Assembly (NCBI RefSeq): GCF_016433145.1
Contig: NC_058130.1
Span: 673,035,104-673,099,103 of the forward strand
Source of the DNA: Gracilinanus agilis
Lineage: Eukaryota
Reading direction: 5' to 3'
Length of the DNA stretch: 64,000 nt
Below, piece by piece: positions 16,501 to 25,500 of the stretch (position 1 is the first letter of the stretch; every line of letters begins with the position of its first letter). The notes beneath the pieces were generated by a model. It was not told where the DNA came from. It saw only the letters and a program-made list of their open reading frames with translations, and made no database searches. A program made the translations under genes and the position numbers.

Positions 16501-19500
16501 TCCTTGGTGGAAGAGTGGTAAGGGTGGGCAATGGGGGTCAAGTGACTTCCCAGGGTCACACAGCTGGGAAGTGTCTGAGGCCAGATTTGAACCTAGGACC
16601 TCCCGTCTCTAGGCCTGACTCTCAATCCACTGAGCTACCCAGCTGCCCCCCTATAGTAACCTTCTAACTGGTCCTCCTCGGTTTAAGTTTCTCCACTTCT
16701 GTCTGTCCATCACAGATGCCAATATGATTTTCCAACATTATAGATCTGAACATACTTATTGTGCCCAATAACCTCCATGGCTTCCAATTACCTTTAGGTT
16801 CAAATATGAACTCCTCTGTTTGGCATAGAAAGCTCTTCACAACCCGACCATTTCCTATGCCTAGTTTCCACAACTTCTTGCCCTTTATGGTCAAGAAATC
16901 ATAATGTCTGACTTGTTCCTTCCATTGGAGCTCAATGAGGCTCAACGTCTTTGAATTGGCTGTGACCATGCTAGGAAAGGGTCTTGGACTTCATCTCTGA
17001 CTCTTGAAATCCTCAGTTCCTTTAGGAGGCAGTTTAAACACTACCTTCTTTAGGAGGCCTTTCCTAGACAGTCAGATGTTAAGGCCTTGTCCCTGGAAGC
17101 TATCTTCTAGCAGCTCTGTATCTTGTTCATTATCTCTTTATGTACACACTGTCATATTGTCTTCCTTACAAGAATGTAAATTCCCTGGGGGAAGGGACTG
17201 TTTTGGCTTATTCACTGTATTTCATCTTAATTTGCCTGAGGCTGAGTACTTTGTACACCATGCTTTAGGGACCTGGGTGACTAGCAATTCCTCATCTTGC
17301 TTATGGAGAGAATAAGGAGTAGGTTCAAGTAGAAGGAGAAAAGATTCAAGAAATACAAAAGAAAAAAATGTACATTTGCAAGGGTGGTCAGGGTGGAAAA
17401 GATTATGAGTTTGGGCTATGGCTATGGAAAATTTTCCCTTATAGGTCTTTAAAATGGAAAGGCCATCTTTTTGGCCTTTCTTCCATCTGTTTGGATTGGT
17501 GTCAGTGTATTGTCAGGGAAGGATGTCTGAAGGTGGAAGCTGTACATAAATTATATAACCACCATGGTTTCTTTTCAGAGAGCTCTATGTAGGCAACTGG
17601 TGGCCCAGTAGACACAGTCAATAGGAAGACCTGATTTAAAATCTGATTATAAGCCACTTACTAGCTGTGTGACTCTTGGCAAGTTGCTTAACCTCTGTCC
17701 AGTTTCTTCATTTGTAAAATGGGATAATAATGACACCTGCCTCAGAGTATCACTGTGAGGATCACACACACACGTACATATTCTCTTTATTTTACTTACG
17801 TTTATATGATATATATTAATACATAACATACATGACATTATATATACATATATATGTATATATGTATATATACTTCTTTCTGTCTTAGTAACAACTCTAA
17901 GACAGTAGGGCAAAGGCTAGGCAAATGTGGCTGACTTGCTAAGAGTCACACATCTAGGAAGTATCTGAGGCCATATACTTGGACCCACATCTTCCTGACT
18001 CCAGGCCTGGTGCTCTATTATGCAACCTAGCTGCCCCTAAATGATGAGACTATAAAGTACTTAGTGCAGTGCCTGGAACATAGTAGGTGCTATATCAGTG
18101 CTTCCCCTATTTCCCTAGATTTGGGATGATCAGTAAGAAATTTTTTGAGCTTTTTATCTGTAATATTTTGAAAAATGGTCCCCATTCCTTTCTATTAGTA
18201 GTATTACATGAGTAACTTACACAAAGGGTATCATTCTTACCTTGTACATTGCTCCATTGTGGAGCGGATAAACTGGCCGATCAAAGCCAGGAACTGTTCA
18301 GTGTATCGGGAATGAAATTGCTTCAGAAGAGTAAGAAGTCCTAGGACCAAGGGAGGCCAGTCAACTGGATCTGTGGGCTTTCGGCAGACCATCCCTAAAG
18401 GCAAAATATAACACCCATGTTAAGTGCTTCCAGTGTGGATCTCAAAATGTCTCATCTCCACTCAATTGTTAATGGAATAATACTGTTAGCTTGTGTGAGC
18501 AAGTCACTCTTCTCTGGGTTTGTTAAACTCTGAGACACAATTGTGAGAAAATGTGTAAACTCTACTAAATTATTTTAATTTTTATATTTTTATAGAAGCT
18601 TTTTGTTTTGACACAGTATTCACTCTCCCAATACTTCAGAGGATTTTAGCAACTGTGATTGATTGATGGTGTACTTAACTTTCCACTCTTGACAGACAGA
18701 AATATCTGAAATTGCTGTATCTGAACTGAACATTATTGTCATTTAGAGTTAACTTAATTTTCTTTGTACTGGACACTGTGCATTATTGCCCTTTTGGTTT
18801 ACTTTCTTACGGATCAGTTCAATGCCATATTTTTTTTTTTCAAAGTAAACAGGTTTTATTTAGAGCATCACTTGGAAAACTATAAATATTGAGGGGTAAG
18901 CATGTAACTTTAGGTATGTAGATATATAAACTGGAGGATTAACTACTCAGCTTCTCTCTAAGATTATGTCAATAATTTAAAATGTATTGTGAATACTAAC
19001 TCTTTAACTGGGTTCTACTGTTGTGTACATAAAAAAACACACCCATAAGTAAATCAGATATTAGTATGAGGTCCAGTTAATAGTAATAGTATATTGTCTA
19101 TAATCCCTTTTATTAATATTTTTACAATATATCATCAATGAAAAGTTGTGATTTTCAACATATACATCCCCTGTATGAACTCAGCTTCTAAAACTCTCCT
19201 TTATACAGACGTCATTCTTCTCTCTCGGTCACAGTCTTCCCATCCATCAGGAATTCCTAGCCCATCCTGACTTTCAGAAACCCCTTAAGACTCCTCCTTA
19301 GGTTAGGTGATTTTATTACTGTCTGCTGAGGACCAGAGTTGGTAGGAGTCACTTTTGGCTGGTCAAGGCAAACAAATGGAGTATTGCAGTCTGAAGAATT
19401 CCATTGTGATTAGTCTAATTTTCCAAATTCAGGTTCTACTATGATACATGCTGATGAAAGGTAAATATATTATATCCTAAATCAAAGGTTTTCACATGAT

Positions 19501-22500: not shown

Positions 22501-25500
22501 TCTGTATTATTAGTCTTGGGATCTTTCCCACAAGCAGTTATTAGGTGAAAAAGAAAAGGAGGTTCATCTACCACCTCTGACTTTTTAGCAGTTGCTTCCT
22601 TCAACCCTGGTTGTTGTGGCTCTACAATTTTGGGGGAGGGGTAAAGAGTCCAGCGATGTATTTTATCCTTTGATACATTACCACTCTTTCCACTCATCTT
22701 AGGTACTATAATTTCTGCTTGCTTAGAGGTTTGACTTTCAGGTTGCTCAGAAGTGCTGAAGTCAAGTAAGCCCTCTGAAGGAAGCTTATCACTTGTAAAA
22801 TCTAATAGGTAATCATTATCATCTTTAGTAGGACCTCTATTCTCTTGCCTTTGCCGTGTATATCTCCCTTGATTATACTTATTTAATTTATTAGATTTCT
22901 TGTTCCATAACATGGTCATGTCATCAATTTGGCAGTTAGAATTCCTGTTTCTCCCAGGCTGAAATATGTCTCCAGGGCCACTATAATTCCAACTTTTTGT
23001 ACCTCGTGCCTTGGATTGCCAGTTTCCACTACTGTTGTTCATGTGCCAAAAACCATCTGTTCCTTCAGAATGCCAGTTGGAATTCCTTCCTGTACCACCA
23101 TGATGCCAATCTACTGTTCCATTGTTTGGATGCCAACCACCTCCAGAATTATTGTGGTTGTGATACCAATTTGAAGTTGCCCCTGGACCACTTTTGTGCC
23201 ACCCAGAACGTCCTCTTGGTCCACCACCATTCCTCAAGGAATGTGGAAAGTTATTTTTCCGACCACCATTGAAGCCATCCTTCTCCCACTTCCAATCCCG
23301 CTGAAGTGGTGCACGATGGTGCCACGATGGCTGATCATAAACATCTCTCTCTTGGTAAGCTCCTCGGTCTTCTCTTCGCCACTGTCGTCTGTCATCAGAG
23401 TTTATTTCTTGGCCAGAAACAGATGCTTCATCGACTTTGTTCATTCCTTTGTTTTATTAGCTGAACGAGCTCTTTGTCAAAGTATTCTTCTTCCACCTCT
23501 TCTTCTTTTCCATCTTCTTCTCTTTCCTGAGCATCAACATTATCCTTGTGAAACTGGCTGGAAATATGTTTTGCATAAGCTGACAAGCCCACCACTGTCA
23601 CCCGGCACACCCGGCACTCATGGTCACTGTCCCTTCCCTTCAAGTTTTCAAGTTCTCTATGATGCAGCATGCTCCGCACATGTTCATTCATTTCCTTTTT
23701 TGAGCTGTATACAGTATGACACAATATACATTTTCGTTTTCGTACCATAGTGACTGGAGCAGAAGACTTCACTTGCACTCGACTTCCTTTACTCCATCGC
23801 ACCGCCGAGGCCCTGGCGAGGAGGGCCTCACCACCCCCGGCCCTGGCCTCCTGGTGGGGTCTGGTGGCCCGCTCCCGGACCCTCGCTCCCCGCCGGGCCC
23901 TGCAGCCGCCGCCCTCAATGCCATATTTCAATAGTTAGACTGTGGCCCTCTCCTGGCCTGAGGGACCCTAGTCACATAATATGAGGAAAGGCAGCAAAGC
24001 CAAAAGGAGAATCTCTCCCAAATCTCAAAGCAGCAGGTAAATAGCAAAGTTCCTGGGATAACTAGCTCAAATTTCCATGTTTTAGTGTTCTACGTATACC
24101 AGGATCAGATGAAAAGAAATGTTTATATTTGAGAAGAGAAGACCTGCTTGAGGGTGGACTAGGAGAGCTGTGTGCAGGTACTGAAAGAACTGTCTTATGG
24201 AAAGGGATTACCTCAGTTATTCTTGGCCCCAGAGGACTCAACTAGAAGCAATGAGGAGAGATGCTACAGAGGCAGATTTCCATTTATATATGGAAATATC
24301 TCACAAATCAGAGTGGTTTGAAAGTTGACAACATATGTAAAGTGCTTTGCAAACTTTAAAGAGCTCTACAGGGGTGGCTAAGTGGCACAATGGATAGAGT
24401 CAGGAGGGCTCAAGTTCAAATATGGTCTCAGACATTTCCTACCTGGGTGGCCCTTGGGGAAGTTACTTAATTCTGCCTACTCCTCACTCTTTGGTCTTAG
24501 AGTTGTGACTAAGACAGAAAGTAAAAATAAATAAAAAGATCTCTATAAATGTCAGCTCCTACTGGATTCTTTAAGAAGGGACCACTTGTCATGAGTGTTC
24601 AGTCTGTTCAGGTTAAACCAAATGACATTTGAGGTTCCTTTTCATTGAATCAACAAATTTTGTGCTTCTTTAATGTTGGACAAATTTAAGACTGATGTGA
24701 AATGGAGTCATACAATCTTTCCTGTCATGACACTTGGGCAAAGCTAATTAATGGATGGGATACATGCTTTTCATCATAAAATATAGTAACAATTTAAGGT
24801 TTACAAAGAACTTTCTTTTTCATTTAAAAAACAAATGAAAAAAACCCTGAAACTCTTACCTTCTATTTTAGAATTGATACTAAGTATTGGTTCCAAGGCT
24901 TAGGGTTTAGGGTGAGGCTACTGAGATTAAGTCACTTGCCCAGGGTTGAACAGCTAGGAAGTGCCCATGGTCACATATGAACCCAGGATACTCCTACCTC
25001 CAGCCCTGGTCCTCTAGCTACTGAGCCACTTAGCTGCCCCTATGAAGCACTTTATTTCTTTTTATTTTTTTTAAATCTTTATCTTCCGTTTTAAAATTAA
25101 TACTGTGTATTGGTTCCAAGGCAGAGGAGTGGTGAAGGCTGAGCAATAGGGGTTAAGTAACTTGCTCAGGGTCACACAGGTAGGAAGTGTTTAAGGTCAG
25201 ATTTGAACCTAGGATCTCCAGTCTTTAGGTCTGGCTCTCAATCCACTGAGCCACCAAGTTGCCCCAAAAGCACTTTCTTAAGAACAAACCTGTCAGGGAA
25301 GTCATTCTGGATGAGAAAGATGTAACAAATGATACATAAAACCAAAGTGATGCTGCAGTATATGAAGAGTAAGTTGGCCAAAAGTTGCTTAACACAGTGA
25401 AAATAAGTCATTCAGAGACTAATATATTTAATAGCAACACTAAGAACTTCCTGTGGCCAACACTTGTTTTTTCATAGCAACAAGAAGGGAACATTAATGA

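Follow-up and report, generated by a model that had tools for sequence, protein, structure and literature searches.

Processed pseudogenes made by long interspersed nuclear element 1 (LINE-1, or L1) are copies of spliced mRNAs that carry a poly(A) tail, lie between the two halves of a target-site duplication (TSD), and typically have no promoter of their own. Partly processed retrocopies, from which some parental introns have been removed while intron sequence has been kept, are a recognised class, according to PMC5470649 (which cites Soares 1985, Baertsch 2008 and Zhang 2014). Other retrocopies have landed in introns of host genes, oriented so that the two can be co-transcribed, and are expressed as chimeric transcripts, as is the mouse Taf9 copy in Ak6 (PMC4772013). 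Here we compare these systems with a copy of ZNF106 (ZFP106) that lies in an intron of WASHC5 in the opossum Gracilinanus agilis. The window, that is, the whole stretch of DNA that was analysed, comprises 64,000 nucleotides (nt) of contig NC_058130.1 (assembly GCF_016433145.1, positions 673,035,104 to 673,099,103 of the forward strand), and all positions given below are counted within it.

With a probability of roughly 0.85, we read the insert as a young, non-functional, partly processed ZNF106 pseudogene, which the Gracilinanus lineage would have acquired about 3 million years ago (roughly 1-8), through target-primed reverse transcription by LINE-1. It is not a copy of the canonical mRNA: the copied coding sequence stops at an internal exon, and an apparent intron continues from there. 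The template was probably a ZNF106 transcript that was polyadenylated within an intron and so lacked the WD40 repeats, which would make the insert a partly processed retrocopy.

Anatomy and parentage of the insert

The insert and its host gene are both read from the minus strand, and we describe all features in that sense unless otherwise noted. The copy of the spliced ZNF106 mRNA occupies 18833-23914, between a TSD copy at 23915-23928 on its upstream side (TCAATGCCATATTT) and a second one at 18819-18832 on its downstream side, the two forming a perfect direct repeat (14/14). Even when one mismatch is allowed, this sequence has only two matches in the 64-kb window, both at the ends of the insert, for a chance expectation of 0.05. 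The copy opens with a leader of 166 nt (23749-23914; 72% G+C), which begins within a GGC repeat. This is followed by open reading frame 1 (ORF1; 23428-23748), which starts at the canonical ZNF106 ATG and encodes, in 106 codons, two C2H2-type fingers with weak Pfam matches to zf-C2H2 and zf-met, before it is ended by a premature TGA. Compared with the parent, the copy lacks 5 nt at the junction of exons 3 and 4 (23430-23433, AGTCG^ATGAAG), and the frame is shifted at this point. The remaining spliced coding sequence, which corresponds to parent residues 108-1262, occupies 19967-23432 and is read in frame +1 with respect to ORF1. A second open reading frame, ORF2 (19938-23444; 1,168 stop-free codons in the same +1 frame), contains it; the internal ATG of ORF2 lies 12 nt upstream of the homology, and ORF2 runs on for 9 codons beyond it, into the tail. 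We considered whether this ATG derives from a lysine-to-asparagine change in the copy; this is ruled out, as the asparagine is already present in the parents of G. agilis, Monodelphis and tammar. Pfam gives no match in the middle piece of the copy (1,171 residues), which is unsurprising, as ZNF106 is disordered there.

The 3' end of the insert is of a different kind. Directly after the last parental codon position there is an unspliced 5' splice site, GTATGT (19961-19966), with which begins a non-coding tail of 1,126 nt (18841-19966; 34% G+C). An AATAAA poly(A) signal at 18855-18860 lies 14-15 nt upstream of a run of eight A (18833-18840), which is the remnant of the poly(A) tail. The plus strand holds a run of eleven T at 18830-18840, three of which are assigned to the TSD; the remnant would thus reach A11 if the TSD were read shorter. 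An earlier sequence-only reading of this DNA had noted the perfect 14-bp TSD, the AATAAA with its A-tail and the GC-rich 5' untranslated region, and each of these is found again here. The same reading had called the copy intronless, which holds for the coding part but does not hold for the last 1,126 nt, downstream of the unspliced donor.

The parent is readily identified. ZNF106 (ZFP106) has C2H2 fingers at its N-terminus, a long disordered middle, and WD40 repeats with further fingers at its C-terminus, and the best protein matches of the long ORF are ZNF106 proteins of marsupials. The copy is 98.27% identical to G. agilis ZNF106 (protein P0121), with 1,135 of 1,155 residues identical and no gaps, as compared with 94.5% for Monodelphis domestica and 87-91% for Australian marsupials; ORF1 matches residues 1-106 of P0121 at 103 of the 106 positions. 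P0121, a RefSeq protein of 1,913 residues, contains both the WD40 C-terminus and the Q107 codon, neither of which is present in the insert. Because of these two parts, and of the 23 residue differences described below, P0121 cannot be encoded at the locus of the insert. The earlier reading required a separate, intron-containing ZNF106 in the genome, and a separate ZNF106 is represented for G. agilis by this full-length model, at the level of the protein.

It had also described the copy as 5'-complete, which holds only approximately. The canonical start, MVR[E/K]RKC, at which the G. agilis model begins, is present in the copy, and so is the leader. When the leader is translated in frame and aligned with residues 24-79 of the Monodelphis model P0001, which starts at an upstream ATG, 52 of the 56 aligned residues are identical; the copy therefore begins at codon 24 of that model, and at least 23 upstream codons are absent from it. 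The leader likewise aligns with the extensions that koala and Tasmanian devil models have from an upstream ATG, and in these species the sequence that the copy lacks is transcribed. As an observation in its own right, the region corresponding to 23749-23914 is a conserved open frame in Monodelphis, koala and Tasmanian devil (P0130, P0001, P0132, P0131, P0005), where the upstream ATGs are annotated as N-terminal extensions (MRG..., MRERSRGG...); the G. agilis model starts at the canonical ATG.

When the insert and one TSD copy are removed, the empty site on the minus strand reads ...CTATTG/AAATATGGCATTGA, that is, TG/AAAT (the slash marks the junction), just as the earlier reading had it. The corresponding nick on the plus strand, ATTT/CA, agrees with the L1 endonuclease consensus TTTT/AA at 4 of 6 positions, which is a loose match; the matching positions include the three T that would prime on poly(A). 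The TSD, the poly(A), the seamless exon junctions and the T-rich nick site together bear out L1-type retroposition; L1 as the source of the enzymes is inferred from what is established about target-primed reverse transcription.

We propose the following sequence of events. The L1 endonuclease would have nicked the plus strand at ATTT/CA within the WASHC5 intron, the exposed strand would have annealed to the poly(A) tail of an RNA from ZNF106 and primed its reverse transcription, and a second nick staggered by 14 nt would have given rise to the TSD. The copied template would have been a polyadenylated, non-canonical ZNF106 transcript from which all upstream introns had already been removed, in which the donor after the exon ending in ...ELLQTN (ATA/GTATGT) had been left unspliced, and which had been cleaved at the AATAAA 1.1 kb into the unspliced intron, so that it would have encoded neither the WD40 repeats nor the C-terminal fingers. 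Splicing to an alternative AG acceptor may also have cost it 5 nt at the start of the large exon 4, a route that we slightly favour over a later deletion. After insertion, the copy would have drifted neutrally.

The template RNA

The exon junctions of ZNF106 were inferred at the protein level, from pairs of isoforms in Monodelphis, koala and tammar. A 66-codon exon is skipped in the comparison of P0001 with P0130 in Monodelphis and of P0003 with P0132 in koala (GR/DSDHEC...EQSR/QDEAS); the large exon of 731 codons is skipped between P0128 and P0123 in tammar (EQS(R)/Q...GLP(R)/FGIEM); and 86 codons are skipped between P0125 and P0130 in Monodelphis (TTQ/GQK...ASS/GLG). All five of the junctions so defined (GR/D, SR/Q, GLP(R)/FGIEM, TTQ/GQK and ASS/GLG) are seamless in the copy.

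Colinearity with the parent stops after ELLQTN, where the parent continues with REISGNY and the copy with SMSVSFLLH and a stop. The DNA at the end of the homology reads ACG AAT A/GTATGT, which is the sole boundary compatible with a GT donor, and which leaves A/GR for the arginine of the parent. The retained donor is rather weak, with no consensus A at position -2 and no G at -1. Beyond 19967 we find no ZNF106 homology by protein alignment, and the tail (18841-19966) has neither a similarity elsewhere in the window by local BLAST nor an Rfam match; both searches, like the Rfam scan of the window as a whole, which returned no RNA family, covered the sequence outside positions 20032-20084. Since colinearity ends exactly at a GTATGT donor, and since what follows is an AT-rich tail that closes with AATAAA, we read the tail as the first part of the parental ZNF106 intron, up to a poly(A) site within that intron. 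A literature search found no link between ZNF106 and intronic polyadenylation, and a search on marsupial ZNF106 retrocopies returned no mention of ZNF106 in its 15 best-ranked results.

The gap at codon 107 requires a closer look. Where the parent has ...EQSR-Q-DEASV, the insert has lost the Q codon and 2 nt more, and a 2-nt GA microhomology permits three equivalent placements of the 5-nt gap. According to the isoforms that skip exons in Monodelphis, koala and tammar, an exon boundary falls within or at the R codon before the gap, and whichever of the phases compatible with the three pairs is taken, the 5 nt that are lost are the first five of exon 4. In the phase with the best consensus (...GGAAG/G, ...AGTCG/A), the missing bases are ACAAG if Q107 is encoded by CAA, in which case a second AG acceptor would lie 5 nt beyond the one normally used.

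Both peculiarities of the copy admit of other origins. The tail could be a second polyadenylated RNA, joined to the first by template switching of the L1 reverse transcriptase, so that the retrocopy would be chimeric; the tail's want of protein homology fits such an origin. However, the switch would have had to hit the end of an exon exactly, at a canonical GTATGT donor and in the correct codon phase, whereas a donor at the exact end of an exon is the signature of an unspliced intron, and no internal run of A or other seam is found at 19966/19967. We regard template switching as very improbable. The gap is more evenly contested. Our inclination is towards an alternative exon-4 acceptor captured in the template, with the odds somewhat better than even and with the splice origin read from the position of the gap. 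A sizeable share of our belief, short of half, goes to a slippage deletion between the two GA dinucleotides after insertion, in a copy whose template had an intact frame up to the intron. Microhomology with three placements is typical of such deletions, at least one small indel is expected in a neutral insert of 5 kb at the divergence estimated below (K ~0.007), and no comparable expectation favours a rare splice variant in the template; yet a random deletion of 5 nt would fall so exactly at the junction in well under 1% of cases, and the missing ACAAG would end in AG, given the best-consensus phase and CAA at Q107. Under either origin of the gap, the full-length frame is broken at codon 107.

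Constraint, lineage and age

In order to determine whether the copy has been held by selection, we aligned it with the ZNF106 proteins of ten marsupials, placing an X at the break and masking positions 20032-20084. The copy differs from its G. agilis parent at 23 of 1,243 residues, and polarisation assigns 19 of these differences to the copy and 3 to the parent, and leaves 1 ambiguous. All 19 of the copy-derived changes fall at positions that are invariant in the ten marsupial orthologues. If copy and parent were under equal constraint (p = 0.5), the binomial probability that at least 19 of 22 changes would be derived in the copy is ~4e-4. Each of the 19 is a single-nucleotide change, ~14 of them are transitions, and 3-4 occur at CpG. 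A sign of purifying selection is thus lacking in the alignment, and the pattern is one of relaxed constraint on the copy.

In a simulation of neutral change, scaled so as to give 19 missense changes, ~8 synonymous and 1.1 nonsense changes are expected alongside them, at a divergence K of ~0.0074 per site. We considered whether the 1,168 stop-free codons of ORF2 might be a sign of selection, and we reject this possibility, as under neutrality ORF2 is free of stops with P = 0.34. The frame itself does not resemble that of a functional retrogene: there is a stop after codon 106, and the coding sequence ends at parent residue 1262 of 1,913. As judged from the sequence, then, the copy is no working gene.

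Three points must be set against the overall account of a decaying, partly processed pseudogene. That the tail comes from an intron is deduced from the copy, and the CAA that an alternative acceptor would need at Q107 is supposed; the 3.8 kb of coding sequence contain no indel that dates from after the insertion, which is somewhat fewer than expected; and the open ORF2, at the simulated probability just given, speaks neither for decay nor against it.

The differences between Gracilinanus and Monodelphis, polarised with the Australian species, allow us to place the insertion on the tree. At the sites substituted in the Gracilinanus lineage, the copy shares the derived state at 17 of 21 and has the ancestral state at 3, and at those substituted in the Monodelphis lineage it shares 0 of 24. 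It follows that retroposition took place in the last 15-20% of the Gracilinanus branch. The didelphid subfamilies split 20.9-19.5 million years ago, and the tribes later (PMC11336674). From the position on the branch together with these dates, we obtain an age of roughly 3 million years, with a Poisson range of ~1-8 million years, and this is consistent with the K of ~0.0074 at a rate of ~2.5e-9 per site per year; the absolute figure of ~3 million years is an estimate. The sequence-only reading had supposed a recent, lineage-specific insertion, a view with which both the shared states (17/21 versus 0/24) and the 98.3% protein identity to G. agilis ZNF106 agree. The insert should be absent from Monodelphis, and it may be common to the closest relatives of G. 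agilis.

The host intron and comparison with known systems

On the minus strand, stop-free segments that flank the insert on either side match Pfam Strumpellin, in the order of the profile: positions 814-870 match at 32141-32386, 965-1011 at 27126-27473, 1008-1044 at 26338-26490, and 1043-1084 at 18240-18419. These matches bear out the location in a WASHC5 intron, in the orientation of the host, which the earlier reading had given. The WASHC5 exons were scanned one by one, rather than as a spliced model. The exon upstream of the insert ('exon 26') occupies 26364-26460, with its AG and GT boundaries read directly and a Pfam match, and the exon downstream of it ('exon 27') occupies 18241-18394, by the same evidence. 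Between them lies the host intron, at 18395-26363, of 7,969 nt as delimited by the splice sites. The insert and one TSD copy make up 5,096 nt of this length, in accordance with the 5.1 of 8.0 kb estimated before, and the empty intron would measure 2,873 nt. The last two coding exons of WASHC5 are seen at ~4482-4571 and ~1523-1579 on the minus strand, the latter ending in a stop codon; thus the window includes the 3' end of the gene, and an intron of ~13.7 kb follows the 18241-18394 exon. As there are two more coding exons downstream, the host intron is the third from last, which presumably corresponds to 'intron 26' in the 29-exon numbering of human WASHC5.

Two further features of the neighbouring introns may be recorded. 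The WASHC5 intron that follows the 18241-18394 exon is interrupted at 14046-14170 by 125 consecutive N, which mark an assembly gap or a mask. Upstream of the insert, at 24826-25265, there is an interspersed repeat of ~200-440 nt, probably a marsupial short interspersed nuclear element, which recurs at no fewer than 15 other places in the window, on both strands and at 70-83% identity (for example at 16472-16649, 30333-30494, 39059-39220, 55078-55503 and 60776-60995).

Given this arrangement of exons, every WASHC5 pre-mRNA must run through 5.1 kb of foreign sequence in the sense orientation. Both the donor of the insert (19961-19966) and its AATAAA come before the next WASHC5 acceptor, which belongs to the 18241-18394 exon and lies 425 nt past the downstream TSD, and ~425-460 nt past the AATAAA. 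Since the retrocopied poly(A) signal came without a downstream element of its own, its strength depends on the flank, and the missing element may explain why the insert has been tolerated.

It is natural to ask whether the copy might be active, through chimeric or read-through RNA of WASHC5 that yields a product of ORF1 or ORF2, or through premature polyadenylation or a poison exon that modulates WASHC5. The insert shares the direction of a host gene that is presumably broadly expressed, and it lies 425 nt before an acceptor; this arrangement would lend itself to activity, as would the intact start codon and AATAAA, the retained 5' splice site and the long open ORF2, and retrocopies in host introns are documented in chimeric transcripts in 13 human and 14 mouse cases (PMC4772013). 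Nevertheless, residues at invariant sites have been replaced in both ORF1 (3/106) and ORF2 (16/1,137), the openness of ORF2 is expected by chance, its translation would need reinitiation after an ORF of 106 codons, and the poly(A) signal lacks its downstream element. In addition, three small sequencing runs from one study of 2021, which fit the kidney, muscle and liver RNA-seq published with the G. agilis assembly (PMC8390783), contain 0.49-0.54 of the sampled words; this weak hint against activity is about what the parent mRNA (~99% identity) and the WASHC5 exon would provide alone, and it is below the level expected if the tail or the flanks had been assembled from RNA. We consider activity of any of these kinds to be improbable. 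A bolder combination is also conceivable, in which the insert would both be the fossil of a real germline ZNF106 isoform without WD40 repeats and, by means of its donor and poly(A) signal, divert some WASHC5 pre-mRNA into truncated or chimeric transcripts specific to Gracilinanus; we would call this unlikely, if slightly less so than activity as just described. The least probable of the alternatives is that the insert is an artefact of assembly, or a rare and unfixed heterozygous insertion. The G. agilis assembly does combine short reads with linked reads, at a contig N50 of 57 kb and with 8% gaps (PMC8390783), and the best DNA-sized sequencing run contains only 0.84 of the sampled words. But a misjoin would not create a TSD, a poly(A) and precise junctions, which are marks of a biological process, the 23 residue differences from the parent protein are not those of a collapsed duplicate of the parent, and a divergence of ~3 million years disfavours a very recent polymorphism. 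We thus retain the reading of a young, partly processed and non-functional pseudogene.

Young retrocopies are common in the LINE-rich genome of G. agilis, of which LINEs make up 42% (PMC8390783), and the ZNF106 insert is of little weight when taken alone. It is an ordinary member of a very well-known kind of processed pseudogene, with two neat features, namely its probable intronic poly(A) end and its possible alternative acceptor. Its usefulness is of three sorts. The relationships among Gracilinanus, Cryptonanus and other thylamyine opossums could be traced by its presence or absence, for which it is a clean marker, as the sequence of the empty site can be predicted. It would also be a record of a ZNF106 transcript that ended inside an intron, possibly with an alternative acceptor, in the didelphid germline or early embryo. 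Finally, it amounts to a natural test of tolerance, in which 5 kb of sense-oriented sequence that brings both a donor and a poly(A) signal sits 425 nt before an exon of WASHC5, an essential gene of the WASH complex.

We return now to the systems with which we began. Relative to its parent, the G. agilis protein, the copy is 98% identical over residues 1-1262, but it is without the ~650 C-terminal residues that comprise the WD40 repeats and terminal fingers, it is frameshifted at codon 107, and it carries 19 private replacements at invariant sites. Like the mouse Taf9 copy in Ak6 (PMC4772013), it is intronic in another gene and oriented so as to permit co-transcription; unlike that type, it is known here from sequence alone, and its coding capacity is broken. 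As in the partially processed retrocopies cited in PMC5470649, some parental introns have been removed and intron sequence has been kept. In contrast to these, only what we take to be the first 1.1 kb of an intron is present, ended by an intronic poly(A) site, and at the protein level the ZNF106 copy is consequently truncated at its 3' end rather than interrupted. With the processed pseudogenes made by L1 it has in common the copied spliced mRNA, the poly(A), the 14-bp TSD and the T-rich nick, as well as the absence of a promoter of its own, the broken frame and the neutral drift. It departs from the typical members of that group in its non-canonical template and in its sense-oriented site within a host intron, and in neither respect is the difference a fundamental one.

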